Virus record (IMG/VR): IMGVR_UViG_3300043418_000114
Coordinates: 124,001-188,000 of that record
Direction: 5' to 3' (one strand)
Length of the DNA stretch: 64,000 nucleotides
Shown here: positions 2,675-62,403 of the stretch, one piece after another
Position numbering within the stretch: the first letter of the stretch is position 1
How the letters are laid out: every line of letters begins with the position of its first letter
Translations under genes and position numbers: made by a program
The notes under the pieces: model-generated
Seen by the model: only the letters and a program-made list of their open reading frames with translations
The model's database searches: none
Told to the model about the DNA's origin: nothing

Positions 2675-3303
2675 AACAAATGTTAATCATTACCGGGCCA
2701 CAAGGGTCTGGTAATCACGTTTTCAGCAAAATCTTTGCGTTACATAACGAAGTATATGGCTGGAAAGACTTACTTAATGAATATTGGATAGCACATGATT
2801 ATGAACCATTTAGTGATTGTTGGGATATGCCTAGCTTACTTAATAGCATTGACTGGACAAACATGGATAATTACGTCACTAGTATCAGTTGCCCATATGC
2901 AAACGAAGGAGTGGCTACAATCCCTCGGTACAAAGATTTCATCAGTGCATTAACTCAACTTGGTATCACTGTTAAAGTCTGTATCATTGGTAGAGACCAA
3001 ACTATCCTTAGACACCAGCAACAAAGAGTAAGAGATAGACACAGTTTACCTGATTTCGAAGGTGAACTAGAATTTTTAAATTCACTAGAGCCAATATATC
3101 TAAGTACAGAGTTGTTATATTTGTACAAAGACTATTATTTAAAGAGTTTGAGTAAAATCTTAGACTTCCCTATAGCATATGATGACCCTAGAGTGTTTGA
3201 AATATTGAAACAAGATGCAAACGAGAAATACTTTCAGAGTATTCCTCAACAAGAGTTAGACAAAACAGTCCGCAAAGTTAGCGGACTAAAGGAAAAAGAA
3301 TGA
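2671..3303 (+). CDS. Sulfotransferase-fold / P-loop-like protein
   Basis: LIITGPQGSGNH loop and VCIIGRD segment; ATGA-coupled to upstream gene. Confidence 0.45.
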   Translation: MKQMLIITGPQGSGNHVFSKIFALHNEVYGWKDLLNEYWIAHDYEPFSDCWDMPSLLNSIDWTNMDNYVTSISCPYANEGVATIPRYKDFISALTQLGITVKVCIIGRDQTILRHQQQRVRDRHSLPDFEGELEFLNSLEPIYLSTELLYLYKDYYLKSLSKILDFPIAYDDPRVFEILKQDANEKYFQSIPQQELDKTVRKVSGLKEKE

Positions 3304-3992
3304 TTAGTAACTGGGAAACAACAAAAGCAAAAAGCAAATATCACTTTGATAATTTTAAGAATGATCCAACCATGGACAAAGTTGAAGTATTAGGGCGAAT
3401 TACAGGCGACTGGTCGCATGAAGTACAGGATATTATTGCTAACAGCAAACCTGCAACTTGGGAAACACGTGGATACAAAGGCGAAGGTGTTATGCCACCA
3501 CGTGAAGATTTGATTGCAGAAGAATACGACTTAGAGAAAACTGGTTACGGAAAAGACCACCAGATAACACACTTAAACTGGAATGTTCCAGACAAGTTAA
3601 AAAAGATTACTGAAATGTTTGGTCTAGATGACTGCATGGAACGTATTCACGTGCAGATGCCAGGCGAAGTTTGGAATCTTCATATCGACAAACTAAACAA
3701 ATGGTGCCCAGAAGAACCATGGAAAGTAATGCGTGTTATGATTCACTTGACTGATTGGGAACAAGGTCACTTCTGGTCGTATGGCAATCACGTTCATACG
3801 CAATGGCATGCAGGTGATGTTACTACATTTGATTGGCAAAACTTGCCTCATTCTACTGCTAATGCAGGACATAATCCACGTGTTACGTTTCAGTTAACTG
3901 GTGTTGTAACACCCAAAACGCTTGATTTTCTTGCTAGGCTAAAACGGTTTAACACGATACAATTAGAGTACAAAAATGAGTCTTGGTTCTAA
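3300..3992 (+). CDS. 2OG-Fe(II) oxygenase (Asp/Asn beta-hydroxylase-like double-stranded beta-helix)
   Basis: HxD (LHIDK), distal His (PHSTAN) and Arg (PRVTFQ) in typical spacing. Confidence 0.7.
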   Translation: MISNWETTKAKSKYHFDNFKNDPTMDKVEVLGRITGDWSHEVQDIIANSKPATWETRGYKGEGVMPPREDLIAEEYDLEKTGYGKDHQITHLNWNVPDKLKKITEMFGLDDCMERIHVQMPGEVWNLHIDKLNKWCPEEPWKVMRVMIHLTDWEQGHFWSYGNHVHTQWHAGDVTTFDWQNLPHSTANAGHNPRVTFQLTGVVTPKTLDFLARLKRFNTIQLEYKNESWF

Positions 3993-4521: not shown

Positions 4522-4534
4522 TGATAAATACATA

Positions 4535-5113
4535 ATGCGTTCCTATCAAATCATAAACGAGTCCCCTGCTACCGAATTGGCCAAGAAATTGCCATCTCTC
4601 CAAAAGCACGACTATGACACCATCGATACCCTGATGCGTAAAATCTCACAGCGTCATCGTATAACTGGTAAGCACTTACATGACTTGTTTGTTAAGCAAT
4701 ATGGAAAAACTCCAGATAACTGGATCAAAGACGATCTATCTGAAGGTGATTCTTCGGAATTAGACATTGATGCGGAAGTTCAGAAGTTTATCAAATGGGC
4801 CGCAAGACGCCTACATCTACAAACTACACCACATATTGAACTGAGCCAAGATACCAAAGACGCACAGGACAATCATCACACAGGACTACATCGTACTGAC
4901 ACTGGTGAAATCTGGATTTACGTAAAGAATCGCAATTTAGTTGATATCTTGCGTACTGTGTTTCATGAGTTGGTACATCATCGTCAAGGTGAGTTAAAGA
5001 TGATTAAGCCAGGTGATAGCTATCCTGGTAGTCCAATCGAAGCAATGGCAGACATGTTGGCTGGTAAATACATCAAGATTTACGGCGAACAAAACCATCA
5101 CATCTTCCAGTAA
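4535..5113 (+). CDS. Late protein with HExxH zinc-metallopeptidase-like motif
   Basis: RTVFHELVHHRQ; ATAAATA at 4524-4530; N-terminus MRSYQIINE. Confidence 0.55.
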   Translation: MRSYQIINESPATELAKKLPSLQKHDYDTIDTLMRKISQRHRITGKHLHDLFVKQYGKTPDNWIKDDLSEGDSSELDIDAEVQKFIKWAARRLHLQTTPHIELSQDTKDAQDNHHTGLHRTDTGEIWIYVKNRNLVDILRTVFHELVHHRQGELKMIKPGDSYPGSPIEAMADMLAGKYIKIYGEQNHHIFQ

Positions 5114-11429: not shown

Positions 11430-11702
11430 ATGAAAGAGGCGGCCGACAGGATCATGAATGATCCAGTGAAGCTCAAAGAGTTTATGCGTAGTGTAATAGG
11501 CCCTGAACAAAGAATTATCGAGGGACAAGAGAAAGAACATCTATTCACGATTTTCAATCTACTTGATCCTCTCGAAGAATCCAACAACCAACGTTCTTGG
11601 ACAACTGTATATGAACATGCAGGAAAAACGTACCACTACACTGTAGGTGATGGGTGGGATGAATTAGCAGAGATATTACCAGATGATTTTCAACAGGATT
11701 AA
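11430..11702 (+). CDS. Hypothetical protein
   Basis: MKEAADRIMNDP... fills the gap between neighbours. Confidence 0.55.
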   Translation: MKEAADRIMNDPVKLKEFMRSVIGPEQRIIEGQEKEHLFTIFNLLDPLEESNNQRSWTTVYEHAGKTYHYTVGDGWDELAEILPDDFQQD

Positions 11703-12147
11703 AGAATTAAAACAACAAGGTCTACGTATCGGTATCACCTTTTCGCAATTTGACTTGCTACATGCAGGTCATGTTGCTATGCTCAGTGAAGCAAAAAACC
11801 ATTGTGACTATCTTATCTGTGGACTGCAAAACAACGCTAGTTGGGATCGTCCTGAAAAGAATAGTCCTATTCAATCAATCGTCGAAAGACAAATCAGTTT
11901 AAGTGCAGTACGTTTTGTTGACGAGATTGTAGTCTACAACACTGAAAAAGACCTAGAAGATATCTTACTAACACTTCCAGTTGACGTTCGTATCTTGGGT
12001 GTAGAGTACATCGATAAAGAATTCACAGGTAAACAAATTTGCCTACAGCGTAATATTGAACTAGTATTCAATGGACGTGACCACAGTTTCAGTAGTTCAA
12101 GTCTACGTAAAAGAGTAGCAGAAGCACAAAATAAGGTACAACAATGA
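11683..12147 (+). CDS. Glycerol-3-phosphate cytidylyltransferase (TagD)-like
   Basis: GITFSQFDLLHAGH, YLICGLQ, VDEIVVY, RDHSFSSSSLRKR. Confidence 0.85.
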   Translation: MIFNRIKELKQQGLRIGITFSQFDLLHAGHVAMLSEAKNHCDYLICGLQNNASWDRPEKNSPIQSIVERQISLSAVRFVDEIVVYNTEKDLEDILLTLPVDVRILGVEYIDKEFTGKQICLQRNIELVFNGRDHSFSSSSLRKRVAEAQNKVQQ

Positions 12148-12446
12148 GTAATTTTTACGATTCATTCGCTAGTAGATACCGTGTCAAACACGTGCAAGTA
12201 AGTCGTGACCGTAGATATGAAACTATCAACTATGGTTATAATCAAACTGCTAGTTACTATGCTGACCGTGAAGAAATTATTGAAATGGAACTTACACGTA
12301 GTGGATTCGAAGATTTGGTCAAGGTAGACAAGGATCATGACAAGTTATGGCAAGACCAGCGCGATGAAGCATGGTTGCGTAAACAATACCCTGCACTCAA
12401 AGATGCATACGACAAATATCAAATGCTATTGGCATTATACAAATAA
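12144..12446 (+). CDS. Hypothetical protein
   Basis: 100 aa coupled ORF. Confidence 0.6.
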   Translation: MSNFYDSFASRYRVKHVQVSRDRRYETINYGYNQTASYYADREEIIEMELTRSGFEDLVKVDKDHDKLWQDQRDEAWLRKQYPALKDAYDKYQMLLALYK

Positions 12447-12457
12447 TAGGAAGTAAC

Positions 12458-13636
12458 ATGACAAAAACAGTAGCAGTTATCGGCGCAGGCATAGCTGGTC
12501 TTACAACTGCGTATTACCTTGTTAGAAAAGGTTATCGAGTTACCGTGTATGAGCAAGAGCGATACGCGGCCATGCGTACTAGCTTTGCCAACGGTGGACA
12601 AATGTCTGTTAGCAATAGCGAAGTATGGACAACCTGGAGCAACGTCAAAAAAGGCGTTAAGTGGCTATTCACCAAAGATGCACCTTTGCTCATTCGTCCA
12701 TGCTTTGACTGGAAGCAATGGAAATGGATCGCTAAATTTCTGTACTACACTGCCAAAGGTGACTACAAAGAGAATACAGCATGGACTGTTCGAGCTGGTC
12801 TAGAAGCCAGAGAACTGTACAAAGAAATCATGTTTGAAGAAGGCATTTCGTTTGATTACTTGGGAACAGGTATCGTACACTTCTACAAAGACAAACAGTA
12901 CTGGGACAATGCTCAAACTGTTAAACAGATTTACAACGACAATGGTTGTGAGTGGGATTTACTAACACCGATGCAAGTGAAAGCTCTTGATCCTGCACTA
13001 GAAAATATCGACAACATGATTGGTGGCACATTCACTCCAAGCGATAGTACAGGCGACATTCACAAATTCTGTATGAATCTAGCGTTAGTTCTAGAGAACA
13101 AATACGGCGTTGAATTCAAGTATGAATCAAACATTACTCGCAACTGGGGCATTGAAGCATTAGCTGATGTGTTCGATGCAGTAGTCATTGCCGCTGGTGT
13201 TGGTAGCACTGAATTAGCAGGGCAAATTGGTGACACGCTAGACGTATATCCAGTCAAGGGCTACTCTATCACAATCAACAATGTTGATCCTAAGTATTTG
13301 CCTAAAGTAAGTCTGTTAGACGATCAAGCCAAGATCGTGACAAGTACATTGGGCAATCGATTCCGTGTTGCTGGTACTGCTGAGTTGACTGGAGAGAACT
13401 ACGATATCACTAGAGATAGAGTTGAGCCATTGTTAGAATGGGTTCATACGAACTTTCCTAATATCAATACAAGCGACTACACCCAGTGGGCATGCTTACG
13501 TCCTATGACACCTAACATGATGCCTATCACCAAACAGAGTGACAGGAACAAGAAAGTGTTCTACAATACAGGACATGGTCATCTTGGTTGGACTCTGAGT
13601 CCATACACCTCTAAGACTGTAGCAGATTTAATCTAA
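12458..13636 (+). CDS. dadA: D-amino acid dehydrogenase (FAD-dependent)
   Basis: VIGAGIAG, TSFANGGQMS, YPVKGYS, RVAGTAE, WACLRPMTP, NTGHGHLGWT. Confidence 0.9.
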   Translation: MTKTVAVIGAGIAGLTTAYYLVRKGYRVTVYEQERYAAMRTSFANGGQMSVSNSEVWTTWSNVKKGVKWLFTKDAPLLIRPCFDWKQWKWIAKFLYYTAKGDYKENTAWTVRAGLEARELYKEIMFEEGISFDYLGTGIVHFYKDKQYWDNAQTVKQIYNDNGCEWDLLTPMQVKALDPALENIDNMIGGTFTPSDSTGDIHKFCMNLALVLENKYGVEFKYESNITRNWGIEALADVFDAVVIAAGVGSTELAGQIGDTLDVYPVKGYSITINNVDPKYLPKVSLLDDQAKIVTSTLGNRFRVAGTAELTGENYDITRDRVEPLLEWVHTNFPNINTSDYTQWACLRPMTPNMMPITKQSDRNKKVFYNTGHGHLGWTLSPYTSKTVADLI

Positions 13637-13637
13637 C

Positions 13638-13880
13638 ATGTCACAAATACACGCAGAGTACCAAGAAGTTTCTAGAGAAGAATATGAACGTAAGACCAGA
13701 GGATGGTCTTACAGGTTCAGTCTTTTGCCAAGACGATGCATGGAAACTGGAAAGCTATTGTGGATGAAACGTGCATATCGTGGCCGTAAGATTCGTCGGT
13801 ACGATATGGATTTATTCTTTCATGACAAGTGGATGTGCAGAGAAGAATTTGTTAAATTAAGATTATTGGAAAAAATATGA
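13638..13880 (+). CDS. Hypothetical protein
   Basis: 80 aa ORF in operon. Confidence 0.55.
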   Translation: MSQIHAEYQEVSREEYERKTRGWSYRFSLLPRRCMETGKLLWMKRAYRGRKIRRYDMDLFFHDKWMCREEFVKLRLLEKI

Positions 13881-14086
13881 GCGAACGAAATAATGACAAA
13901 GAATGGTTAGACAAAGTTATATTAGGATGCACAGTCTATAACGAAACACGAATTCATACAGATTTTCAAGAAGATGAAGTATTGAAATTCGTAGAGTGGC
14001 TACACAAGCAATACGGCATTGAGTACGTGAAGCCTAAGGCAACGCATCAAAATACTCCAGAACATAAAGCAAAGGGCAAGCAATGA
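13877..14086 (+). CDS. Hypothetical protein
   Basis: ATGA-coupled 69 aa ORF. Confidence 0.55.
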   Translation: MSERNNDKEWLDKVILGCTVYNETRIHTDFQEDEVLKFVEWLHKQYGIEYVKPKATHQNTPEHKAKGKQ

Positions 14087-14271
14087 GACAAGTGGTAATT
14101 ACACGTAAACAGTATGAAAAACTAAAAGAAGTTTTCGAAATGTACGATTTGGATAGAGTTATATACACCGAAGATTCAAGTAAAGGCGCAGGTATCGGTG
14201 CGGTCACTACCATCGAATTTGATCCTAGACAATCTATCAAGATGGATATCACTGACGTAGAGAGTTGGTAA
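14083..14271 (+). CDS. Hypothetical protein
   Basis: ATGA-coupled 62 aa ORF. Confidence 0.55.
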   Translation: MRQVVITRKQYEKLKEVFEMYDLDRVIYTEDSSKGAGIGAVTTIEFDPRQSIKMDITDVESW

Positions 14272-14432
14272 TGGAACTACGTTATTTGCGTACACGAGAA
14301 GTAGACGGCACTGTGCATCAGGTGTTACAGTATAGAACACAGATTCAAGTGCCTGACTATAGCACAGAAAAGCATATTCCTAAGGTAGTATGGACTGACT
14401 GGAAAGATGTGCCAGTAGTCGAGAGTAATTAA
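14271..14432 (+). CDS. Small hypothetical protein missed by the ORF track (53 aa)
   Basis: TAATG coupling; MELRYLRTREVDGTVHQVLQYR...WTDWKDVPVVESN*. Confidence 0.6.
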   Translation: MELRYLRTREVDGTVHQVLQYRTQIQVPDYSTEKHIPKVVWTDWKDVPVVESN

Positions 14433-14983
14433 AGGCTTTTGCCCCAGCGAGTATTAATAACGTTCCAGTTAATAATCTTCCACTGTTCTTTCAAGTATTT
14501 TTTCTTGTCAGAGCCATAATCTAATAGCCATGCATGTTCCCACCAGTCTACTAATAGTAGAATGTCACTGCGAACTTCATGGTTTTTTATGGTCTTGATT
14601 TTGCCATCAGTGGATAGATAGATCCAGCCGCTACCTTCTATCTTCATAGCTTCTTCTTGGAATTGCTCCTTGAAGTCATCCCATGAGTTATAATGCTTGT
14701 TGATAAAGCCAAGCATGGGACCATTTGGCTTGTTAACGTTTCGTACTTCACGAAACTGAGGGAATAACATGTTATGCAAGAATGCACCTGCATAGTTGAA
14801 ATCCCTATCACCTTCTTTGTTGTTGTAACGTTCAGCATAACCATGCGCTAACTTGCCATAGTGTAAGTCCAATGTCTCTTTAGACAGCACAGGACTTACA
14901 TCTTTTGGCTCGAAGTTTAGTTGAATGATTTCTATATCTTGAGGCTTGCTTTTAGCCTCAAGTAGCTGAATCAAGTCACGCAT
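14429..14983 (-). CDS. sod: Fe/Mn superoxide dismutase
   Basis: LHYGK, AFLHNM, GSGWIYL, DWWEHAW metal ligands. Confidence 0.9.
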   Translation of the reverse strand: MRDLIQLLEAKSKPQDIEIIQLNFEPKDVSPVLSKETLDLHYGKLAHGYAERYNNKEGDRDFNYAGAFLHNMLFPQFREVRNVNKPNGPMLGFINKHYNSWDDFKEQFQEEAMKIEGSGWIYLSTDGKIKTIKNHEVRSDILLLVDWWEHAWLLDYGSDKKKYLKEQWKIINWNVINTRWGKSL

Positions 14984-14984
14984 T

Positions 14985-16550
14985 TTAGTGTCTCAACAAT
15001 AGAGTACTTAGAACGTTTTGATCGTTCGCAGAGATATCGCCTTCACCTGGTGCAACAATGACGTTGTACTTCATGCCACCAACTTTAGGCTTGCGTGTAT
15101 ATTCATCATAAGATAGAATAGAGTTTGGTGCTAGACCATACTGTTTAGCTAGACGTTGTTTTAGTTCACCTAGCTTGTCTGGTTGAACTTGCCATTGACC
15201 TTCACCACCTTTGACTAGGTTGCCCTTTTGATCTTTAACCAACAAGTCTTGGAACAATTCATCAGGAACAATACGTGAGTTCTTTGTCTTTTCTAGACTT
15301 GGATCGCTAGCTTTGACTTGTTTCTCTTGTGATGTATGAGCGCCTTCACTCCAGTTGATAATGAAGTTAGCTGGCTTCTTAGCAAGTGCCGCATTAGCCA
15401 TCTTTGTGTAAGCATAGAACTTAACACCAGGATGCTTTTCAGCCATCTTTAGTGCCATGTCTAGATATTCTGGAGAGAAGAAATCACCAGCATCGTGCCA
15501 ACGAATTGTTACTTCATAACCACCCTTGTCGCCAAGTTTTTCTTCTTTGGTAATCTCTGCACTTAGTTGATTGAAGAAACCATCTGGATCATTCAATAGA
15601 TATGTCAAGATACGACCATCACTTTGCCAAGCATTCTTGAACTGAACTTTACCGCCCTTCATAGCGAAGCAATCTACTTTACATGAACCAGCACCTGGGC
15701 ATGTGTTCACAATGATTAGCTTGTCAGTTTGTTCGTCTACTGCAATACCAGTTAGTGCGGCGAAACCAACGTTAAAGAACTGTTCTAGTTCACCGTTGCT
15801 GTGCTTCATCTTCTCGTTCTGCTTTAGCAATGCCTTAGGGCGTTGCTTTAGTGTGGCTTTAACAGCATCTTCGCTGTATGTCTTGCCATCAGGACCCAAG
15901 TATTCAACAACACTAGAACGATGAATATAAGGCATCTTATACTTGTCCGTCTTTGTCTTACCAGAAACATACTTTTCAGCACCTGATTTTTTATCTAATT
16001 TAACTTGACCAGTTTTCTTATCAATGTCTGGAGTACCAACAATACGTTTCATGTAGTCTTGAAATTCATCACCGCCAAATTCACGACTTTGTGCTGGCAA
16101 TGCAGTAGCCTCATCTAAACCAGATAACTTACGAATTCTGGATAGATGTTCTTCGCTTTCCTTGAATGTTAAGCCTTCACCTGCTCTGGTTCTAACATAG
16201 CGAATAACTTGTTCTACCCATCCACTAACATCACTAGAACCGATTTCATCATCAGGACCCAAGTCAACCCAATCAGCAACTTCATCAATTGCATCCATGA
16301 TTGCCTGTGGGCCATATTTTGCCAACAATCCATGATGTTGATTTAAGATACGACGAGTGATTGCTTGAGATACCGGACTGTCTACACGACCTTCTGATAA
16401 TTCTTGCTCAACTTCTGCTTGTTCGCCTTCGGTTTCACCTGGCATATCGCCAGATTTAGCAACGAATTGCTGTGGTGTCATAATCTGGATGCCCGATGGT
16501 GCACCTGGCATTTTTGGCTCTGAGCCCTCTAGTAAATGTCTGATTTTCAT
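14985..16550 (-). CDS. GP88-like (radical-SAM-like Fe-S) protein with long acidic N-terminal extension
   Basis: NTCPGAGSCKVDCFA (Cx5Cx3C), IRWHDAGDFF, FYAYTK. Confidence 0.65.
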   Translation of the reverse strand: MKIRHLLEGSEPKMPGAPSGIQIMTPQQFVAKSGDMPGETEGEQAEVEQELSEGRVDSPVSQAITRRILNQHHGLLAKYGPQAIMDAIDEVADWVDLGPDDEIGSSDVSGWVEQVIRYVRTRAGEGLTFKESEEHLSRIRKLSGLDEATALPAQSREFGGDEFQDYMKRIVGTPDIDKKTGQVKLDKKSGAEKYVSGKTKTDKYKMPYIHRSSVVEYLGPDGKTYSEDAVKATLKQRPKALLKQNEKMKHSNGELEQFFNVGFAALTGIAVDEQTDKLIIVNTCPGAGSCKVDCFAMKGGKVQFKNAWQSDGRILTYLLNDPDGFFNQLSAEITKEEKLGDKGGYEVTIRWHDAGDFFSPEYLDMALKMAEKHPGVKFYAYTKMANAALAKKPANFIINWSEGAHTSQEKQVKASDPSLEKTKNSRIVPDELFQDLLVKDQKGNLVKGGEGQWQVQPDKLGELKQRLAKQYGLAPNSILSYDEYTRKPKVGGMKYNVIVAPGEGDISANDQNVLSTLLLRH

Positions 16551-16567
16551 ATTAATTCCGTATATAG

Positions 16568-16610
16568 TTGACTTTATTGCGTAACTGTGCTACACTTATC
16601 TATTATTTAT
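16568..16610. promoter_or_regulatory. Back-to-back sigma70 promoter (+, uvsE) and late promoter (-, GP88-like/SOD)
   Basis: TTGACT-N17-TACACT at 16568-16596; TATTTAT at 16604-16610. Confidence 0.65.
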
Positions 16611-16625
16611 CTCTTTGGACTCCAT

Positions 16626-17660
16626 ATGCACTCTTTTGACCTTACCACAAAACGCATCGGTTTTGCTTGTAAATTCGCTGAAATTAACAAGAAAGGCGAG
16701 ATTGCATCCGTCGATGGACTGAACACTGGTGGTACTACACTAGCTTGGGCAAGACGCAACAATCGCAGTACAGTAGAAGATAAGCTACTTGACGTTGCAA
16801 AAACCAACATTAACAACACTCATGCACTTATCAAGCGTGTGGCATCCCTGCCAGAGCCACTGCGTATGTTGCGTATCACTAGCGACATGCTGAGTCTCTA
16901 CACTCATCCAGAATTCAAAGATTTCTGGCAGTCTGCCGACATGCAATCCAGTCTAGAACGCTGGATGGCACCACTTGGTGAAACTGCACGTGCCAACAAT
17001 GTTCGTCTTTCATTTCACCCTGGACAATTCGTTGTTTTGGCAAGTGACAGCGACGATGTTCTAAATAACAGTATCGAAGAATTTGAATATCACGTGGACT
17101 TGGCCAAATGGATGGGCTACGGTAAGCAATTTCAAGATATCAAAATCAACGTACATATCGCAGGTCGTAAAGGCCCACAAGGCATCCGCGATGCGTACAA
17201 CCGTTTGTCGCCAGAAGCGAGAAACACACTCACACTAGAAAATGAGGAATACACACATGGACTATCTGACTGCCTATCACTATCTGACCTCTGTCCTACG
17301 GTCATGGACATTCACCACAATTGGATTCGTGAAGGGTCCTATATTGATCGCAATGACGATCTTGTTAAAAAGGTTATTGACAGTTGGCGCGGTGTTCGTC
17401 CTACTATGCACTATTCTGTTTCTCGGGAAGACGTACTTGGAGAACATCCCGGACACATCCTTCCCGATCATGGTGCGTTGATTCTTGAAGGCCACACAAA
17501 AGCAAAGCTCCGTGCCCACTCAGACTTTTACTGGAATGATGCAGTGAATGATTGGGCATTGACTTTCATGGACGGCTTTGATATCATGTGCGAATCAAAA
17601 GCTAAGAACCTTGCTAGCTATAAACTATACGAAAGAGCAAAACAAAATGGGATTATTTGA
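16626..17660 (+). CDS. uvsE: UV-damage endonuclease
   Basis: RIGFACK, LRITSD, RLSFHPGQF, INVH, TLENEE, MDIHH, MCESKAKN. Confidence 0.92.
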   Translation: MHSFDLTTKRIGFACKFAEINKKGEIASVDGLNTGGTTLAWARRNNRSTVEDKLLDVAKTNINNTHALIKRVASLPEPLRMLRITSDMLSLYTHPEFKDFWQSADMQSSLERWMAPLGETARANNVRLSFHPGQFVVLASDSDDVLNNSIEEFEYHVDLAKWMGYGKQFQDIKINVHIAGRKGPQGIRDAYNRLSPEARNTLTLENEEYTHGLSDCLSLSDLCPTVMDIHHNWIREGSYIDRNDDLVKKVIDSWRGVRPTMHYSVSREDVLGEHPGHILPDHGALILEGHTKAKLRAHSDFYWNDAVNDWALTFMDGFDIMCESKAKNLASYKLYERAKQNGII

Positions 17661-18072
17661 CAAACTATTCGGCAAAAAGCCAGAACCAGAAAAGGTAGAG
17701 GCTCCTAAGCCTGCACCTAAGCAAAAAGAAAAGAAAGTTCCTGAACTATCAGCCAAAGAAAAGGCAACTCAAGCGGGTGAGCCTTATGTTAATATCTTAA
17801 GCATGGAAGTTGATCCTAAAGATATTAATTCAGGTGCGTTTGAACTTGACTGGAACGACAAGTTTGTGTTAAACTTGATTCGTGCTGGGTTCAAGATTCG
17901 TGATGACGACACTGATAGTCAAATTGTTGACAGATGGTTTCAAACTGTATGCCGCAATGTGGCACTTGAACTCTATGAACAACAACAAGCTGATCCAGAT
18001 AATCGCTACAAGGCAGACCTACGCACGGTCAGTACAAAAGATATCGGTGATGGCAGAACAGAAGTAAGCTAA
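17647..18072 (+). CDS. Conserved-looking hypothetical protein
   Basis: MGLFDKLFGKK...FELDWNDKFV; coupled to the exonuclease. Confidence 0.65.
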   Translation: MGLFDKLFGKKPEPEKVEAPKPAPKQKEKKVPELSAKEKATQAGEPYVNILSMEVDPKDINSGAFELDWNDKFVLNLIRAGFKIRDDDTDSQIVDRWFQTVCRNVALELYEQQQADPDNRYKADLRTVSTKDIGDGRTEVS

Positions 18073-19073
18073 TGAAATACGCATTGATCGATACCGCAAA
18101 TACATTCTTCCGTGCCCGACACGTAGCGGCACGTGGTGCTGACACATGGGAAAAAGTTGGCATGGCAATTCACTTGACGATGGCCAGCGTCAATCAAATG
18201 GTACGCAAGTTTGGCATTGACCACGTTGTGTTCTGCTTAGAGGGTCGTAGCTGGCGCAAAGATGTTTATCCTCCATATAAGAAGAATCGTGTCGTTGATG
18301 AACAATCGACTACCGAAGCTGAGAAGGAAGAAAACGAAATGTTTTGGGAAACGTATGATGCGTTTACCACCTATCTCCGTGAGAAAACCAATTGCTCAGT
18401 GTTGCGTCAAGGTGAAGCAGAAGCGGATGATCTGATTGCCCGTTTCATTGCACTGCATCCAGATGATGAACACTTTATTATCAGTACAGATACGGACTAC
18501 GTACAACTGATTACACCAAAAGTCAAACAGTACAATGGCGTTACTGGTCAGTTGATCACACTCGAAGGCTACTTTGATGACAAAGATCGTCCTGTCAAAG
18601 ACAAAGTTACCAAAGAACCTAAACTATTGGGCGATCCACAATACTTGTTGTTCCTCAAGTGTATGCGCGGAGACACATCCGATAACGTATTCTCTGCATA
18701 TCCTGGGGTGCGTGAGAAAGGTTCTAGTAAGAAAGCTGGCATTATGGAAGCATATGCTGACAAAGACAAGCAAGGCTTTACCTGGAACAACATGATGCTC
18801 CAGCGTTGGGTCGATCACAATGGTGTTGAACACAAGGTTATCGACGACTATAAGCGTAACGTTATCTTGATTGACTTGACTGCACAACCTCAAGAAATTA
18901 AAGACAAGGTTGATCTTGAAATTATTCGAGGTGTTCGCACCGAGACTGTGCCTCAAGTTGGCATTCATCTGATGAAATTCTGTGGTAAATATGAACTTAA
19001 TAAAATCTCTGAAAATGTTGAAACTTATAGTAAGTGGCTTAATTCACCGTATAAAGGGATCCTACATGAGTGA
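18072..19073 (+). CDS. rnh: 5'-3' exonuclease / T4 RNase H-like (FEN family)
   Basis: LIDTAN, EADDLIA, STDTDYVQL, MRGDTSDNV. Confidence 0.88.
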   Translation: MKYALIDTANTFFRARHVAARGADTWEKVGMAIHLTMASVNQMVRKFGIDHVVFCLEGRSWRKDVYPPYKKNRVVDEQSTTEAEKEENEMFWETYDAFTTYLREKTNCSVLRQGEAEADDLIARFIALHPDDEHFIISTDTDYVQLITPKVKQYNGVTGQLITLEGYFDDKDRPVKDKVTKEPKLLGDPQYLLFLKCMRGDTSDNVFSAYPGVREKGSSKKAGIMEAYADKDKQGFTWNNMMLQRWVDHNGVEHKVIDDYKRNVILIDLTAQPQEIKDKVDLEIIRGVRTETVPQVGIHLMKFCGKYELNKISENVETYSKWLNSPYKGILHE

Positions 19074-36362: not shown

Positions 36363-37712
36363 ATGTCCGCATCGTGGATTCAAAAACTGAATGAGTCTGA
36401 TAGTCGTCTTCACAAAGAGGACGTACTGCAACAAGCACTCGAAGCCGCTACGCTCGGTAGCACAAATTCAATTACTTTCTTGAGCTATCTCAAGTCATGT
36501 TATAACCCATTCTTGACTTTTGGTGTCAAGCAGATTCCTGACACTGTTGGCATCACTGGTGCTGATAATCCCTGGAGTGAATTCAATCAACTCATGATCG
36601 ATCTTGGTCAACGCAAGTTGACTGGACACGCCGCACGTGATGCGATTCTAGAACTGTCAGAGCGTTTTGATTCGGAAGAATGGAACACATTCCTTGCTCC
36701 GGTACTGCGCCGCGACATGCGTTGTGGTATCAGCGAGAAGACTATCAACAAAATCTGTAAAAAGACTGACTACGAAATCCCCGTGTTTGGTTGCCAACTA
36801 GCAACTAACTCGGAAGGTCGTCCTGAAATGAAGGGTATCAAACGACTTGAGCCTAAGTTGGATGGTGTTCGTGCCCTGTTCATGGTCATTCCAAGTGACG
36901 ACGGTGAAGTGACTACAATCTGTTTCAGTCGCAATGGCAAACAGTTTGATAACTTTACTCACATTGAAGATCAACTTCGTACTAACTTCATTAACATTGT
37001 TAATGCATGTAACGGCACTGATCAAGGTCGTGGACTAGTTCATGGCTTTGTTATGGATGGCGAAGTGATCGGCAATACATTCCAAGAATTGATGCGCCAA
37101 GCTCGTCGCAAGAGTGACGTACAAGCTGATGATAGCGTATTCAATATCTTTGATATCGTACCACTAGCTGACTTCCGTCGTGGCTACTGGAATGCTCAAC
37201 TTGAAAAGCGTATCAAGCTCCTCGAAGCTATGCGTACGGTGGTCGACGACATGCCTAACGTTGAACTGTTGCCTCATTTGATGGTCGACTTGAGCACCGC
37301 AGAAGGCCAAGATCAATTGCATCGTTATGCTGTAGATCAAGTCAATGCTGGATTTGAAGGCATCATGATTAAAGAAATGCAATCCCCATATCAGTGCAAG
37401 CGTAGTACTGATTGGATGAAATGGAAGCCTACTATCACTGTTGACCTTGAAGTCATTGGCGTTGAAGAAGGTACTGGTCGTAACGTTGGTCGTCTTGGTG
37501 CACTTGTATGTGCAGGCATTGATGATGGCAAAGAGATTTTCGTAAACGTTGGTAGTGGTCTCAGTGATGCAGACCGAGATGAATTCTGGGCCAATCGTAA
37601 TGTAGTTATTGGTCGCACTGTTGAAATTTTATGTGATGTGATTACACAAAACCAAGATGGTACTTACAGCCTGCGTTTCCCTCGCTTTGTTCGCTTCCGT
37701 GATGACAAGTGA
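36363..37712 (+). CDS. lig: ATP-dependent DNA ligase
   Basis: EPKLDGVR (motif I), VMDGEV, FNIFD, FEGIMIK, WMKWK, SLRFPRF. Confidence 0.95.
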   Translation: MSASWIQKLNESDSRLHKEDVLQQALEAATLGSTNSITFLSYLKSCYNPFLTFGVKQIPDTVGITGADNPWSEFNQLMIDLGQRKLTGHAARDAILELSERFDSEEWNTFLAPVLRRDMRCGISEKTINKICKKTDYEIPVFGCQLATNSEGRPEMKGIKRLEPKLDGVRALFMVIPSDDGEVTTICFSRNGKQFDNFTHIEDQLRTNFINIVNACNGTDQGRGLVHGFVMDGEVIGNTFQELMRQARRKSDVQADDSVFNIFDIVPLADFRRGYWNAQLEKRIKLLEAMRTVVDDMPNVELLPHLMVDLSTAEGQDQLHRYAVDQVNAGFEGIMIKEMQSPYQCKRSTDWMKWKPTITVDLEVIGVEEGTGRNVGRLGALVCAGIDDGKEIFVNVGSGLSDADRDEFWANRNVVIGRTVEILCDVITQNQDGTYSLRFPRFVRFRDDK

Positions 37713-38026
37713 TGTTATACGTTGAATATAAATGGGCCAAACGCCCAGGACGCATGGGAATATTCCACAAGAGCAAACGAGTTGGCGTTAGGTCTAAGTT
37801 TGTTCGTGGAAGTCAACCAGGTCTAGCGCGTTGGAAGATTGCCAATCTAACAGACGAATACAAACCGCATGAATTCTTTGCTATTCTGAGTTTTGATAAT
37901 CTCAGTAATTGGGTTGAGAATAGTCCGCAGTGTAATCCAAGACTACAAGCGGCCTACAATAAACATAGATTCATACGTGGCAATATTGCACATCGTTATA
38001 TTAGACGACTGAGTGGTGAAGAATGA
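37709..38026 (+). CDS. Hypothetical protein
   Basis: Coupled to the ligase stop. Confidence 0.45.
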   Translation: MMLYVEYKWAKRPGRMGIFHKSKRVGVRSKFVRGSQPGLARWKIANLTDEYKPHEFFAILSFDNLSNWVENSPQCNPRLQAAYNKHRFIRGNIAHRYIRRLSGEE

Positions 38027-38144
38027 CATTAACTAAGATTGAATTAAACAAGGACAATCGCATGTTGCGTATTGGCTTTGGTAAGAATGACGGCAACTGG
38101 TTTGCCCGTGTTGACTTGTGGTGTGTGGGATTTAGGATCATACA

Positions 38145-38381
38145 ATGAACGAACGAATTAAAGAACTTGCTGAACAGGCTTATGAACAACAGCCGCTGAT
38201 GATTGCTAATCCCGAAACATTTGAAATTGAACATAAGATTGGCAACGGTGGAGTTCCTATATATCATAAAGTGTTTAACCAAGAAAAGTTCGCCGAGTTA
38301 ATTGTTCGGGAATGTATTGCTCAATGTAATGATGGTGATAGTCGGTGGTTTATCGCACAACATTTTGGAATTGAAGAATGA
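38145..38381 (+). CDS. MNERIKEL-family cassette protein
   Basis: MNERIKELAEQA...EKFAELIVREC...QHFGIEE. Confidence 0.75.
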   Translation: MNERIKELAEQAYEQQPLMIANPETFEIEHKIGNGGVPIYHKVFNQEKFAELIVRECIAQCNDGDSRWFIAQHFGIEE

Positions 38382-38725
38382 ACGAACGAATTAAAGAACT
38401 AGTAAGACTAGTCCAATCCCTTAAAGATAGATTTTTTGTCAAGCGACCTGTAGATATACTACTAGGTGAGTATTGGGCACAATTAGAAGAATTGTGGAAA
38501 AGTGAACTTATTAATCTGCCCAGGTGTGCCCCGGGTAAACTGTATTACGCCAGTGATATCATAAAATTTATAGAACAAGATGTGGCACCAAAATATGGAT
38601 TTAAATTAATCCGTAAACCAAATGAAACCCACAATGGGTTGTTGAAGGATATACCCTGTTACTGGATTAGATTCAATGACCCCAAGAAGGTAACAAGATT
38701 TACAACAGAGTTCGGAGTTGAATGA
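38378..38725 (+). CDS. Chimeric cassette protein (family termini, unrelated core)
   Basis: Begins MNERIKEL and ends EFGVE but lacks EKFAEL/EC. Confidence 0.65.
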   Translation: MNERIKELVRLVQSLKDRFFVKRPVDILLGEYWAQLEELWKSELINLPRCAPGKLYYASDIIKFIEQDVAPKYGFKLIRKPNETHNGLLKDIPCYWIRFNDPKKVTRFTTEFGVE

Positions 38726-38931
38726 TGAACGAGCAAACAAGAATTAAGTATTCGTATGTTTCTATTTTACCAGAAGAAATGTCACCATATTCATCTGCGG
38801 TTAGAATAAGTCACAAGGATTCTACTGTTAAAGAATTGTTAGATCAGTTGTGTGTGAATAGTCAGATCAAAGATGAAAATGGTAAAATTGTGAGCAGTAT
38901 TTTCGATATCAATTACGAGGTTATTGAATGA
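38722..38931 (+). CDS. Hypothetical protein
   Basis: ATGA-coupled. Confidence 0.55.
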   Translation: MMNEQTRIKYSYVSILPEEMSPYSSAVRISHKDSTVKELLDQLCVNSQIKDENGKIVSSIFDINYEVIE

Positions 38932-39185
38932 ACGAACGAATTAAAGAACTTGCTGAACAGGCTGGCTGTGGCTATTTGTATGATTATTCAGCAGACGGAC
39001 ATGCAATGGTTTGTAATGTAAATGACATTGAAAAGTTTGCCGAGTTGCTTGTCAAGGAATGTGCTATGCTTGTCGAGGGATTTATACTTGATCAAGAGGT
39101 AGCTCTTGACGAATATGTTGAATATGAAGCAAGTAGTGTACTTCGAGAACACTTTGAAATAAACAGTGAAAGTAAATCTACATGA
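38928..39185 (+). CDS. MNERIKEL-family cassette protein
   Basis: MNERIKELAEQA...EKFAELLVKEC...REHFEI. Confidence 0.75.
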   Translation: MNERIKELAEQAGCGYLYDYSADGHAMVCNVNDIEKFAELLVKECAMLVEGFILDQEVALDEYVEYEASSVLREHFEINSESKST

Positions 39186-39379
39186 AAGAATCAGTAAGCC
39201 GTGAAGAACTCTCTGAAATTATCAACCGAGAGTTATTGGCATTTGTCGGGCATCCTAATACCGAAAAGACTAGACAAGCCATCTTTGAAATGATATTATC
39301 TTTAGTTAATAGGTTTCCTGAGAAAATTGATTTGATTCAAGAAATCATACAAGAAGGAATGAAGAATGAATCCACATGA
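39182..39379 (+). CDS. Hypothetical protein
   Basis: Coupled ORF. Confidence 0.5.
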   Translation: MKESVSREELSEIINRELLAFVGHPNTEKTRQAIFEMILSLVNRFPEKIDLIQEIIQEGMKNEST

Positions 39380-39572
39380 TTTAGAGGGCAAGAAATATAT
39401 ATTTGAAGATGGTGCTGAAATATTCATTAAGCACGTAAAAGACGTTGATGCTGAACGCGGTACACTTCAGGTAACATATCTTGTCACAACTAGTCCTAGA
39501 AGCATACCTAGACAACTCATACTACCATGGCAAGAGTTTCAGGAGCACTATGGACACTTGTTTAAAGAATAA
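39366..39572 (+). CDS. Hypothetical protein
   Basis: 68 aa with AGGA RBS. Confidence 0.55.
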   Translation: MNPHDLEGKKYIFEDGAEIFIKHVKDVDAERGTLQVTYLVTTSPRSIPRQLILPWQEFQEHYGHLFKE

Positions 39573-39579
39573 ATATTAG

Positions 39580-41289
39580 ATGTATAAAAAAATCATAAAT
39601 TTACCAAATCTAACTCTATTGGTCGCACTGTGTTTGAGTACAGTAGCGGCCTATTATAGTATTATTGGTTTAACTGCAATTTTTGCAGGGGCAGTTATTC
39701 CAGTTATTATCATGGGTAGTATGCTCGAAGTGGCAAAGATTACTACCACTGTATGGCTACGCAAATACTGGAATCGTGCTGGCTGGGTCATCAAGATGTA
39801 CCTTGTTCCTGCTGTTATTGCATTGGCTCTACTCACTTCGATGGGTATCTTTGGATTCTTGTCTAAAGCTCACTTAGATCAAAACATTGGATCTGGTGAT
39901 GTACAAGCAAAAGTAGCATTGCTTGATGAAAAGATCAACATTCAACGTGACAACATTAAAGCTAGCAAAGCGGCACTAGCACAAATGGATACCCAAGTCA
40001 ATGATATCATGACTAAGGGTGATAGCGAACGCAGTGTTGAACGTTCCGTTATGATTCGCAAGCAACAAGCCAAAGAACGTGCTAGCTTGATGAAAGATAT
40101 TGAAGTTGCCAATAAAGAGATTCAAGCTCTTAATGCAGAACGTGCGCCTATTGCAAGTGAACTCCGCAAAGTAGAAGCCGAAGTTGGCCCTATCAAGTAT
40201 ATTGCCGCCTTAATTTATGGTGACAATGCAGATCAAAACATGCTAGAGTCTGCCGTTCGTTGGGTTATCATTCTGTTAGTTGTTGTATTCGACCCACTTG
40301 CCATTGCACTTGTATTAGCTGGCAATCAAAGTAAAGAATGGAACGATGACGAACCTGAATACGAACCTGATAATGGTCCTATTAATGAAGAAGCACTGGC
40401 ATTATTACGTGCCAAAGTAGAACAAGATTTACCAACTGGTGAATTAATCACAAAGTCAGAATTGTTTCCTGATCCAGAAGAAGGTAACAAACTTATTGAT
40501 GAACTCGAAAAAGAAGTACCAGAAGTTGTTCTTCCAAATGAACCAATGCAGTTTGTTGATTTTGGTGAGCATCCAAAAGACTACGATGAAAATCAAGTTG
40601 AAGAACCTGTGGTTGAAGAAGAAAAATCTATTCTTGAACAACATCCATACTTGTTGAATGGGTTTGATCACTTCTCTAATACTACGCCAATTGTTCATAA
40701 GCCAGAGCCAAAGAAAGTTGACTTCACTCAAGGCAGATATGAAGTTAGCGATCCAGTCATGAGCTATAATATTGTCTTGCCAGAGCCAGCGATTGAACCA
40801 GCTCCAATGCCAGAGCCAACAAGTGAAGTGTTCGATAGACCAGGTGACTATATTGTTCCAGAAGACACTTCGGAACTTATTACACCAGAAGTCAAACAAC
40901 AATTTGTCGAAGAAGAAGATGGCTACGTGATCTATGACGGATTGCACATGAGTAAAGATGCCTTAAAAGGAATGCATCCAGAGTTGTTCACATTGAAAGC
41001 TGATGAAGGTCGACCAATTAAAACTAACTTTGGTATTGGTTTCCCATCACAAGCTGATAAAGGTGATATCTTTGTTCGTGTTGATATGCTACCAAATCGT
41101 GTGTACAAATTTGATGGACACGGCAAGTGGATAGAAGTCAACAAAGAAATCACTGACACATATCTACACAATCAAAAATATCTACAACACCTTGTCAACA
41201 TGATTGAACGTGGTCAATATGATGTAGAATTGCTTTCTGAAAATGAGAAGGCTGAGATTGAAGAATATCTACGCAAGCAAAATGGTTGA
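39580..41289 (+). CDS. Late multi-TM coiled-coil protein with acidic Pro-rich linker
   Basis: ATAAATA at 39569; three N-terminal TMs, long heptad region, fourth TM, Glu/Pro-rich linker, small C-terminal domain. Confidence 0.75.
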   Translation: MYKKIINLPNLTLLVALCLSTVAAYYSIIGLTAIFAGAVIPVIIMGSMLEVAKITTTVWLRKYWNRAGWVIKMYLVPAVIALALLTSMGIFGFLSKAHLDQNIGSGDVQAKVALLDEKINIQRDNIKASKAALAQMDTQVNDIMTKGDSERSVERSVMIRKQQAKERASLMKDIEVANKEIQALNAERAPIASELRKVEAEVGPIKYIAALIYGDNADQNMLESAVRWVIILLVVVFDPLAIALVLAGNQSKEWNDDEPEYEPDNGPINEEALALLRAKVEQDLPTGELITKSELFPDPEEGNKLIDELEKEVPEVVLPNEPMQFVDFGEHPKDYDENQVEEPVVEEEKSILEQHPYLLNGFDHFSNTTPIVHKPEPKKVDFTQGRYEVSDPVMSYNIVLPEPAIEPAPMPEPTSEVFDRPGDYIVPEDTSELITPEVKQQFVEEEDGYVIYDGLHMSKDALKGMHPELFTLKADEGRPIKTNFGIGFPSQADKGDIFVRVDMLPNRVYKFDGHGKWIEVNKEITDTYLHNQKYLQHLVNMIERGQYDVELLSENEKAEIEEYLRKQNG

Positions 41290-61842: not shown

Positions 61843-62403
61843 ATGAAAATCACAGAACTTGAAAAGAAAATGCCCCATCTGTATCTTGATATGGATGGGG
61901 TTCAAGCTGACTTCTTTGGTGCATGGGCTGACAAGCATAACGTTAGTCACTGGAGAGCTATCCAGGACAAAGAAGGTGAAATCGAAGAACTGGCAAACAG
62001 TACACCAGAACAAGTCTACGATTTCTTCCGCAAGCTAAAACCACTACCAGGTGGACAACTAATTATCAATTGGTTGAAAGAAAACAAAATCCCCTTTACC
62101 GTACTGAGTGCTCCTCTACGGGGCCCATACGCCGATGTTAGTAAGCAAGCCAAACGTGATTGGTTAGATGAACATAATCCAGGTACTAGCGAAGATGCTA
62201 TCTTTACTAGCGGCAAGCAAAAGTACGCAGTGACAGATGGTGTTGCTAATGTACTAGTTGACGATTTTGGACCCTATATCCAAAAATGGACAGATGCTGG
62301 CGGCATACCCGTCAAGCATGAGGATGAATCAGAAGTTGCAAGTGCCGCTGAGGACACTATTGAGAAACTAGAAAAGATTTATTCTCCTTATCTAAAACGA
62401 TAA
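61843..62403 (+). CDS. HAD-family 5'(3')-deoxyribonucleotidase-like protein
   Basis: YLDMDGV.ADF, VLSAP, LVDDF. Confidence 0.8.
   Translation: MKITELEKKMPHLYLDMDGVQADFFGAWADKHNVSHWRAIQDKEGEIEELANSTPEQVYDFFRKLKPLPGGQLIINWLKENKIPFTVLSAPLRGPYADVSKQAKRDWLDEHNPGTSEDAIFTSGKQKYAVTDGVANVLVDDFGPYIQKWTDAGGIPVKHEDESEVASAAEDTIEKLEKIYSPYLKR

Follow-up and report, generated by a model that had tools for sequence, protein, structure and literature searches.

A GP88-family protein and an Fe/Mn superoxide dismutase as candidate virion cargo of an uncultured jumbo phage

Organization and promoter of the gene pair

The window analyzed here, a stretch of 64,000 nucleotides (nt), comprises bases 124001-188000 of the complete 364,247-bp IMG/VR record IMGVR_UViG_3300043418_000114, the genome of a jumbo phage with direct terminal repeats. 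Within a mostly plus-strand region of this window lies a minus-strand unit of two genes, coding respectively for a protein with a GP88-family domain (gene gp88) and for a superoxide dismutase (SOD) of the Fe/Mn type, with the single base 14984 between them (Table 1). An earlier note on this DNA had described the same unit, with the same spacing and family assignments, as a late operon in which the SOD may protect an oxygen-sensitive radical enzyme. Our analysis upholds the first half of this interpretation, but hardly the idea of the SOD as a guardian of the GP88-like protein. The best-supported picture is that the pair is the reduced form, in this phage, of a modular late cassette of capsid-packaged and probably ejected enzymes, here a GP88-family protein with a three-cysteine site and an Fe/Mn SOD, and we give the cassette reading a probability of roughly 0.55. 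No close cultured relative was found, the jumbo phages of Dickeya matching only in short stretches of UvdE, the divergently transcribed neighbor of gp88.

The heptamer ATAAATA, already pointed out in the earlier note, is present upstream of gp88 at 16604-16610 on the minus strand. Because the heptamer is not enriched in the window (17 matches against 14.8 expected), the octamer GATAAATA was analyzed instead, and it is this octamer that constitutes the meaningful unit. It occurs 43 times in the whole genome, with 30 copies in intergenic DNA, which makes up 9% of the genome, and with 32 copies no more than 120 nt upstream of a start codon on the same strand, mostly 12-30 nt before the ATG. Of ten genes behind the octamer, six have matches to PHROGs for virion structural or tail-fibre proteins. 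The region upstream of gp88 is almost invariant in relatives, where it reads TGATAAATA; the UvdE-gp88 spacer is near-identical in at least 10 relatives, and [GT]ATAAATA is present in all 41 distinct versions of this spacer. The genome also codes for a homologue of gp55, the late sigma factor of T4, with a weak but significant match (8.6e-6). The octamer statistics, the virion genes behind the octamer, the conserved spacers and the gp55-like sigma factor together make a late operon a reasonable reading of the unit. A simple scan of its minus strand for sigma-70 promoters and terminators gave nothing above shuffled sequences. UvdE, by contrast, is preceded on the plus strand by a conserved sigma-70-like promoter (TTGACT-17-TACACT, 16568-16596), which would place it and gp88 in different promoter classes. 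A gp21-type prohead protease and the gp55-like sigma factor are encoded outside the window, at G000:C1:285860-286300 (-) and 298357-298629 (-).

Table 1. Features of the gene pair and its divergent neighbor, in window coordinates
Feature	Position	Strand	Remarks
GP88-like gene (gp88)	14985-16550	-	521 amino acids; first gene of the unit
Fe/Mn SOD gene	14429-14983	-	184 amino acids; second gene of the unit
Late-promoter-like octamer GATAAATA	16604-16611	-	53 nt upstream of the gp88 ATG
5' leader of gp88	16551-16603	-	overlaps the reverse complement of the divergent sigma-70-like promoter of UvdE
gp88 codons 1-8 (MKIRHLLE)	16527-16550	-	resembles the T4 capsid-targeting sequence; ends in an LxE site
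Variable leader of GP88-like protein, residues 9-235	15846-16526	-	acidic to residue 160, then Lys-rich
GP88-family catalytic domain (predicted), residues 236-521	14988-15845	-	ends in an invariant C-terminal His
Cx5Cx3C motif, Cys284/Cys290/Cys294	15669-15701	-
N-terminal extension of SOD, 17 residues	14933-14983	-	starts MRDLIQLLE; tag-like
UvdE, UV-damage endonuclease	16626-17660	+	divergent neighbor; own sigma-70-like promoter

Sequence and structural affinities of the two proteins

The GP88-like protein matches the Pfam family GP88 (PF17338) over residues 242-410 with 91.2 bits against a cut-off of 24.4 (E-value 1.2e-25), and the same model is matched by all members of an alignment of 54 diverse GP88 domains, in which the domain numbering plus 235 gives the numbering of the full protein. 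The family is a large one, with 511 loci in IMG/VR, 1280 close cluster representatives and 1091 representatives at 50% identity, reaching down to 33% identity. Its conserved part is always the C-terminal ~286 residues; what precedes it is, among relatives, anywhere from about 20 to 1160 residues long. In the protein from the window the N-terminal 235 residues have no match in Pfam; the leader of some 230 residues, which had been called acidic throughout, is acidic only in residues 1-160 (isoelectric point, pI, 4.7) and turns basic in residues 161-235 (pI 9.25).

Cysteine occurs at just three positions of the protein (284, 290 and 294), all of them in the segment CPGAGSCKVDC at residues 284-294, which was recovered as previously reported along with the segments RWHDAGDF and YAYTK. 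In the 54-domain alignment the invariant positions are N10, K12, C49, C55, C59, N85, R115, Y146, K148, P158, N160, S166, D270 and the last residue, H286. With gp88 of mycobacteriophage L5 and gp56 of the Streptomyces phage Gilgamesh aligned as well, C49, C55, C59, R115, G120, D121, Y146 and T147 are invariant. These two proteins have Cx6Cx3C-Y-A and Cx5Cx3C-Y-A respectively, and both keep RxHxxGDF and YxYT[KR], the motifs in common with the protein from the window being C-x5/6-C-x3-C-[YF]-A, R-x-H-x-x-GDF and Y-x-Y-T-[KR]. L5 gp88 differs in its length of 239 residues, its extra C-terminal cysteines and its lack of an N-terminal tag; relative to the Pfam family, the clade of the window adds such a tag (described below), a leader that is long and variable, and a C-terminal third of its own, ending in the invariant histidine.

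An AlphaFold2 model of the domain (mean predicted local distance difference test score, pLDDT, 93.2; predicted template modeling score, pTM, 0.89) has alternating strands and helices, with the cysteine loop placed directly after the strand formed by residues 42-47. In the PDB, Foldseek had no match at E <= 0.001; its best rows there were weak and were generic barrels, GH18 and EAL domains among them. In a Foldseek-independent fold search about 12 of the top 18 rows were enzymes of the radical S-adenosylmethionine (SAM) superfamily, the best solved fold matches to the domain; spore photoproduct lyase was tied there with QueE, ChlB, the pyruvate formate-lyase activating enzyme (PFL-AE) and others within 1 Z unit. 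With spore photoproduct lyase, QueE and PFL-AE the modeled domain would share a partial barrel in which a loop bearing three cysteines follows the first strand and the strand ends carry conserved residues. Among viral structure models the domain matches Gp37/Gp68-like (DUF5131) at 4.9e-7 and DUF7227 at 1.5e-3, and viral radical-SAM models only at 0.05-0.17. A few of the 54 aligned members weakly match Pfam DUF7227 and DUF5131, with which a language-model search agrees, and DUF5131 stands in the radical-SAM superfamily table of RadicalSAM.org, adjoining the spore photoproduct lyase cluster. A shape search of the ESM Atlas recovered the GP88 family itself only.

Other results count against membership in the radical-SAM superfamily. 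The CX3CX2C motif is absent, Cx5Cx3C being invariant in its place across the 54 homologues, none of which matches PF04055 (Radical_SAM) even at an E-value of 5; hhalign against eight of the phage's own radical-SAM cores gave a probability of 0.5%, which, the radical-SAM alignment being crude, is weak negative evidence. The 54-sequence profile found nothing among PDB sequences, NCBIfam has no family for the protein, and the literature yielded no functional work on PF17338, GP88, DUF5131/DUF7227 or "gene product 88". Endonuclease III, the sole match when PDB sequences were searched with the GP88-like protein (E-value 0.14), was treated as noise.

We read the GP88 domain, from its predicted fold and its sequence relationships, as a probable DUF5131-like relative that belongs at the edge of the radical-SAM superfamily. 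A metal centre is most likely bound by its three cysteines, the leading guess being a [4Fe-4S] cluster, site-differentiated as in DUF5131 and that superfamily. The alternative is a Cys3 zinc site, structural or catalytic, in a non-radical barrel hydrolase or transferase with no need of SAM or anaerobiosis. The missing CX3CX2C motif, the lack of any Radical_SAM match in Pfam or profile searches and the ordinary barrels that head the Foldseek results, weak as these are, would all agree with such an enzyme, for which the invariant N245, K247, R350, D353, D356, K383, D505 and C-terminal H521 could form a hydrolytic site; zinc would also suit a protein stored in particles in oxic water. It fits poorly with the predominance of radical-SAM enzymes in the independent fold search, with a cysteine loop situated after the first barrel strand as in that superfamily, and with the listing of the related DUF5131 within it, and we consider the zinc enzyme doubtful, though the most credible of the alternatives discussed here.

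The genome additionally codes for nine canonical Radical_SAM (PF04055) proteins, an unusually large complement for a phage, in loci L106-L113 outside the window (G000:C1:334594-351732, 13753-17277 and 37124-40483). Seven of the nine genes are clustered (334-351 kb; ~336-350 kb), far from the SOD gene, and some lie in open frames of 668-755 amino acids.

The product of the second gene matches Sod_Fe_C (PF02777) with 79.6 bits against a cut-off of 20.9 (E-value 2e-22). Sod_Fe_N (PF00081) scores 23.7 bits against a cut-off of 27, and alignments to PDB sequences cover residues 18-59 of this part, including the first histidine ligand. At E <= 0.001 the protein matches 158 SOD sequences of the PDB, the closest being those of Porphyromonas gingivalis (1ues, 1.5e-22, and 1qnn), with several archaeal SODs among them. 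H41, H70, D146, H150 and the gateway Y49 align to the metal ligands and tyrosine of 1ues and are invariant in 22 distinct phage SODs, a set that includes the PA5oct type and that of Vibrio phage 2.275.O. The outer-sphere glutamine was not found in the alignment with 1ues, where Ala67 occupies the Fe-type position; the invariant His135, within an NHE segment, appears by our own reading of the alignment to lie at the Mn-type glutamine position. The identity to the PA5oct SOD is 38.5% over 99% of the length. Relative to Fe/Mn SODs such as 1ues, 1qnn and archaeal forms, the enzyme thus keeps all four ligands and the gateway tyrosine, and differs in its compactness, the weak N-domain score, the alanine and histidine at the two positions just named and the tag-like extension. 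Judged by its conserved residues, it looks functional.

A shared N-terminal tag and the case for virion cargo

The GP88-like protein and the SOD begin with similar short segments, MKIRHLLE and MRDLIQLLE. In orthologues of the former the first nine residues are kept as M[KN][IF]xxLxEG and the rest of the leader drifts. In the SOD the segment opens the 17-residue extension, after which the alignment to PDB SODs begins at residue 18; this extension is conserved in relatives and fits the strict form of the tag pattern. Many other genes of the phage start with MRAKEFISEG, MRAHEFLTEG, MRATEFITER, MRIFEFVNEE, MRSYQIINES and similar segments, and a loose pattern fits 21 of 465 gene starts as against 11 of 2012 internal methionine positions, a comparison that is descriptive only, as are all the tag statistics and p-values, because the patterns were chosen after the data had been seen. 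With the same proviso, strict T4-like patterns fit 23-28% of 138-145 diverse GP88 representatives, and many more look alike by eye; MTKTYREFLQE at the start of P0202 is an example.

The corresponding starts in T4 are MKTYQEFIAE in ipII and ipIII and MKTFKEFTST in ipI, and this capsid-targeting sequence is the sole feature common to the otherwise diverse internal proteins of T-even phages (PMC3012670). A prohead protease of the T4 gp21 type (Peptidase_S77, 5.6e-28) is encoded in the genome of the window phage. The T4 enzyme cleaves after (L/I)xE. Just upstream of the protease gene and behind a copy of GATAAATA lies a small tagged open reading frame (MKLMEMFD), which recalls T4 genes 67 and 68. 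Further tagged genes occur in and around the window: one starting with MRSYQIINES at 4522-5113 (+), after TGATAAATA at window position 4522, one with the tag-like start MKITELEKKM at 61843-62403 (+), and three consecutive ones (MRAFEF, MRAEEF and MRATEF) at G000:C1:121024-123442, ending 560 bases before the window, the last of which has a C-terminal domain of the lysozyme or chitinase type.

The other tagged proteins are effector-like; among them are a domain of the lysozyme or chitinase type, pieces of giant proteins and a weak kinase match. The operon itself is variable in relatives. Of 32 distinct relatives in which the UvdE-gp88 spacer is long, 28 carry behind the late motif a gene that the window lacks; it codes for a basic protein (pI ~10, 116-826 residues) starting with MR[AIF]xE[FI]IxE, with a 4-nt overlap between its stop codon and the gp88 ATG. 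L004, the closest relative (95% identity), has the order tagged basic protein (2919-3353, +), gp88-like gene, SOD. In the complete 367-kb relative G001 the SOD gene lies directly behind an GATAAATA of its own, and the gene after SOD in G001 and in a second relative, G003, starts with MRASEFITEA or MRAYEFITEA.

Some GP88 domains form the C-terminal end of polyvalent proteins of 1000-1470 residues, the parts of which include ART-PolyVal, Sigma70_r1_1, DUF6886 and PARP-like domains, all of them combined with GP88 in the protein P0259. Polyvalent proteins have been proposed to be delivered with the DNA (PMC5512222); the paper in question does not mention the GP88 domain. The GP88-like protein of the window has one recognizable domain and so is not itself polyvalent, what it may share with these proteins being the theme of effectors delivered with DNA. 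Gilgamesh gp56 is located between capsid and adaptor genes. The SOD homologue of PA5oct, EST35_0261, carries in GenBank the note ESI-MS/MS (tandem mass spectrometry with electrospray ionization), which its neighbors lack; this label marks, in the PA5oct paper, proteins detected in purified particles. That paper does not discuss the SOD, and reviews of polyvalent proteins and of jumbo phages mention neither GP88 nor SOD.

The tag, the late promoter, the modular operon with basic genes resembling those of internal proteins, and the occasional occurrence of GP88 in polyvalent proteins point, in this large clade of jumbo phages, to cargo of the virion that would act as soon as infection begins. 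In the mechanism that we envisage, transcription would start at the T4-late-like GATAAATA promoter, read with the gp55-like sigma factor, and the two proteins would be made late as a translationally coupled pair. By analogy with T4, the short amphipathic tag ending in glutamate would bring both into the scaffolding core of the prohead, the gp21-type protease would remove it at the LxE site, and the proteins, now mature, would be packaged along with the DNA and delivered to the next host by ejection. One of the two cargoes would be the GP88-family enzyme, a variable leader joined to a conserved partial (beta/alpha) barrel, whose three invariant cysteines, placed in the loop that follows the first strand, would hold the putative metal centre; the other, the SOD, might remove superoxide at the start of infection or within the particle.

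Among the known systems closest to this arrangement is that of the T4 internal proteins IPI, IPII and IPIII. The two have in common a short tag of the same character (MKTYQEFIAE in T4; MKIRHLLE, MRDLIQLLE and MRAKEFISE here), a late promoter resembling TATAAATA, a genome that codes for a gp21-type protease, an operon that also holds small, basic tagged proteins (here in the relatives), and diverse cargo sharing nothing except the tag. In T4, denV lies beside ipII and ipIII, as UvdE lies next to or near gp88 in most relatives. The differences are in the cargo, which here would comprise enzymes, a SOD and, behind a leader of 227 residues, a Cys3 barrel of 286 residues, in a tag about one residue shorter, and in the phage, an uncultured jumbo phage of 364 kb rather than a T-even phage. 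Virion-packaged SODs have precedents in the chlorovirus PBCV-1 and in Megavirus chilensis, in which Cu/Zn SODs are expressed late and meet reactive oxygen at the start of infection; these differ from the present enzyme in SOD family, host domain and packaging route.

Several points weigh against this reading. The gp55 match is weak, the motif lies 53 nt from the gp88 ATG rather than at the usual 12-30 nt, and the tag patterns were selected with the data in view. The material behind the PA5oct proteome was a purified lysate, and some of the proteins in it are enzymes that do not belong to the virion. The match to radical-SAM enzymes is weak, and a [4Fe-4S] cluster, being oxygen-labile, would sit awkwardly in particles carried through oxic water. 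The founding member of the family, gp88 of L5, has its place at the right end of that phage's genome, away from the structural genes, in a region that we take to be expressed early, and for these reasons the GP88 family is not always virion cargo. Lastly, the data show the genes and their families, the conserved residues and fold, the statistics of the promoter motif, the conservation of the tag, the operon variants and the patchy adjacency; packaging, cleavage, ejection, metal content and chemistry are steps that we infer.

Some of these points would accord with both proteins being unpackaged, late cytoplasmic enzymes that act, for example, on phage DNA or nucleotides before packaging, with the tag serving translation initiation or some other localization: the similarity to the T4 tag is short, and L5 gp88 lies outside the structural module. 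This we regard as rather unlikely, in view of the tag itself, which many unrelated effector-like proteins carry, as do basic proteins akin to the internal proteins of T4, the gp21-type protease in the genome, the GP88 domains within polyvalent proteins and the detection of the PA5oct SOD homologue in virions. Far more speculative is an extension of the cargo reading, in which a radical-SAM-like iron-sulfur enzyme would be packed in the capsid with the SOD and, once injected with the DNA, act within seconds on the incoming genome or a host target; one version of it would be the reversal, in the manner of spore photoproduct lyase, of ultraviolet (UV) lesions formed in the DNA while it is packaged and condensed, the SOD preserving both the cluster and the DNA. 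We hold this to be very improbable; if true, it would be the first injected radical enzyme, with GP88/DUF5131 as a family of delivered effectors.

Under the cargo reading, bacteriophages may, like some giant eukaryotic viruses, carry a SOD in the particle, as the PA5oct proteome, in which the protein goes unnamed, appears to support. The shared tag would likewise offer a simple rule, based on sequence, by which the repertoire of ejected proteins could be listed for uncultured jumbo phages with T4-like heads. GP88, DUF5131 and DUF7227 are widespread viral families, of which GP88 now has a concrete setting for tests.

The pairing with SOD and the genomic neighborhood

Among the 78 related loci with enough downstream sequence, scored for SOD up to 6 kb downstream, a SOD gene directly follows gp88 in 26 (tightly abutted in 22, and with a 367-nt gap in 4), and no SOD was found within that distance in the remaining 52. 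When SOD presence is mapped on a tree of 64 distinct GP88 domains, the most parsimonious reconstruction has 11 changes, and well-supported branches force at least 5. G001 and G003 have their SOD (79% and 62% identity) some 65 kb away from gp88, immediately upstream of a gene for a DUF6886 protein or a GNAT protein with a LysM domain. The SOD homologues of the PA5oct-like phage Callisto and of Vibrio phage 2.275.O are not adjacent to any GP88 gene, and five more distant GP88 contexts have no SOD. By reason of this patchy adjacency, the repeated changes on the tree, the remote SOD genes of G001 and G003 and the GP88 contexts free of SOD, the SOD is an optional, mobile module of the cargo cassette, and neither an obligate partner nor a dedicated guardian of GP88.

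In relatives whose SOD stands apart from gp88, the gene after the SOD codes for a tagged protein that has DUF6886 or a GNAT domain plus a C-terminal LysM domain, as in L104:2-1552 (-) and L105:2-1501 (-); DUF6886 is the same domain that occurs in the polyvalent P0259. In two related polyvalent contexts (L084:8001-14795 and that of P0197), a protein of 1435-1470 residues ending in GP88 is encoded 2-4 kb from a 146-residue Ferritin-family gene, and also near Mom-like genes, a gene for a deoxycytidine monophosphate deaminase or one for an S-adenosylhomocysteine hydrolase.

These observations bear directly on the proposal of the earlier note that the SOD specifically shields the [4Fe-4S] cluster of an oxygen-sensitive radical-SAM-type GP88 enzyme from superoxide. 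The 1-nt coupling in the window, the same arrangement in a third of the scored relatives, the invariant cysteines in a radical-SAM-like fold and the ferritin genes of the two polyvalent contexts would all be in keeping with it. The co-occurrence that the note had put forward as a check is patchy, however: two-thirds of the loci have no SOD within up to 6 kb downstream, the association has been gained or lost repeatedly, SODs stand apart from GP88 in G001, G003, Callisto and Vibrio phage 2.275.O, the distant GP88 genes are without one, and the nine canonical radical-SAM genes of the genome are far from the SOD. Specific protection is accordingly unlikely, and the SOD is better viewed as one interchangeable component of the cassette.

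The divergent gene is a clear UvdE (Pfam UvdE, 3.1e-34; phrog_8420, 3.2e-83), located upstream of GP88 in most of 80 loci, and also in one relative at 52% identity. A functional pairing of GP88 with UvdE was nevertheless set aside; the two are syntenic, but they belong to different promoter classes and do not stay together in distant relatives. A module for the repair of UV and photo-oxidative damage, in which the GP88-like protein would be a direct DNA-repair enzyme akin to spore photoproduct lyase, working with UvdE on damage built up in the genome, and the SOD would counter photo-oxidative stress, is highly unlikely, as the lyase is but one of several tied fold matches, the sigma-70-like promoter of UvdE stands against the late motif of gp88, more distant GP88 genes have other neighbors, and the synteny of two genes in related phages says little about a common function.

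No tRNA genes were found in the window. Downstream of UvdE, a protein of 141-164 residues (17578-18072, +) matches a virion-structural PHROG (4.3e-9) and is followed by a 5'-3' exonuclease gene of the flap endonuclease (FEN) type (18072-19073, +), both genes being syntenic in most relatives. On the other side of the unit, at 11683-13636 (+), lie a cytidylyltransferase-like gene and a gene for a 392-residue oxidoreductase dependent on flavin adenine dinucleotide (FAD), of the DAO family (3.5e-60).

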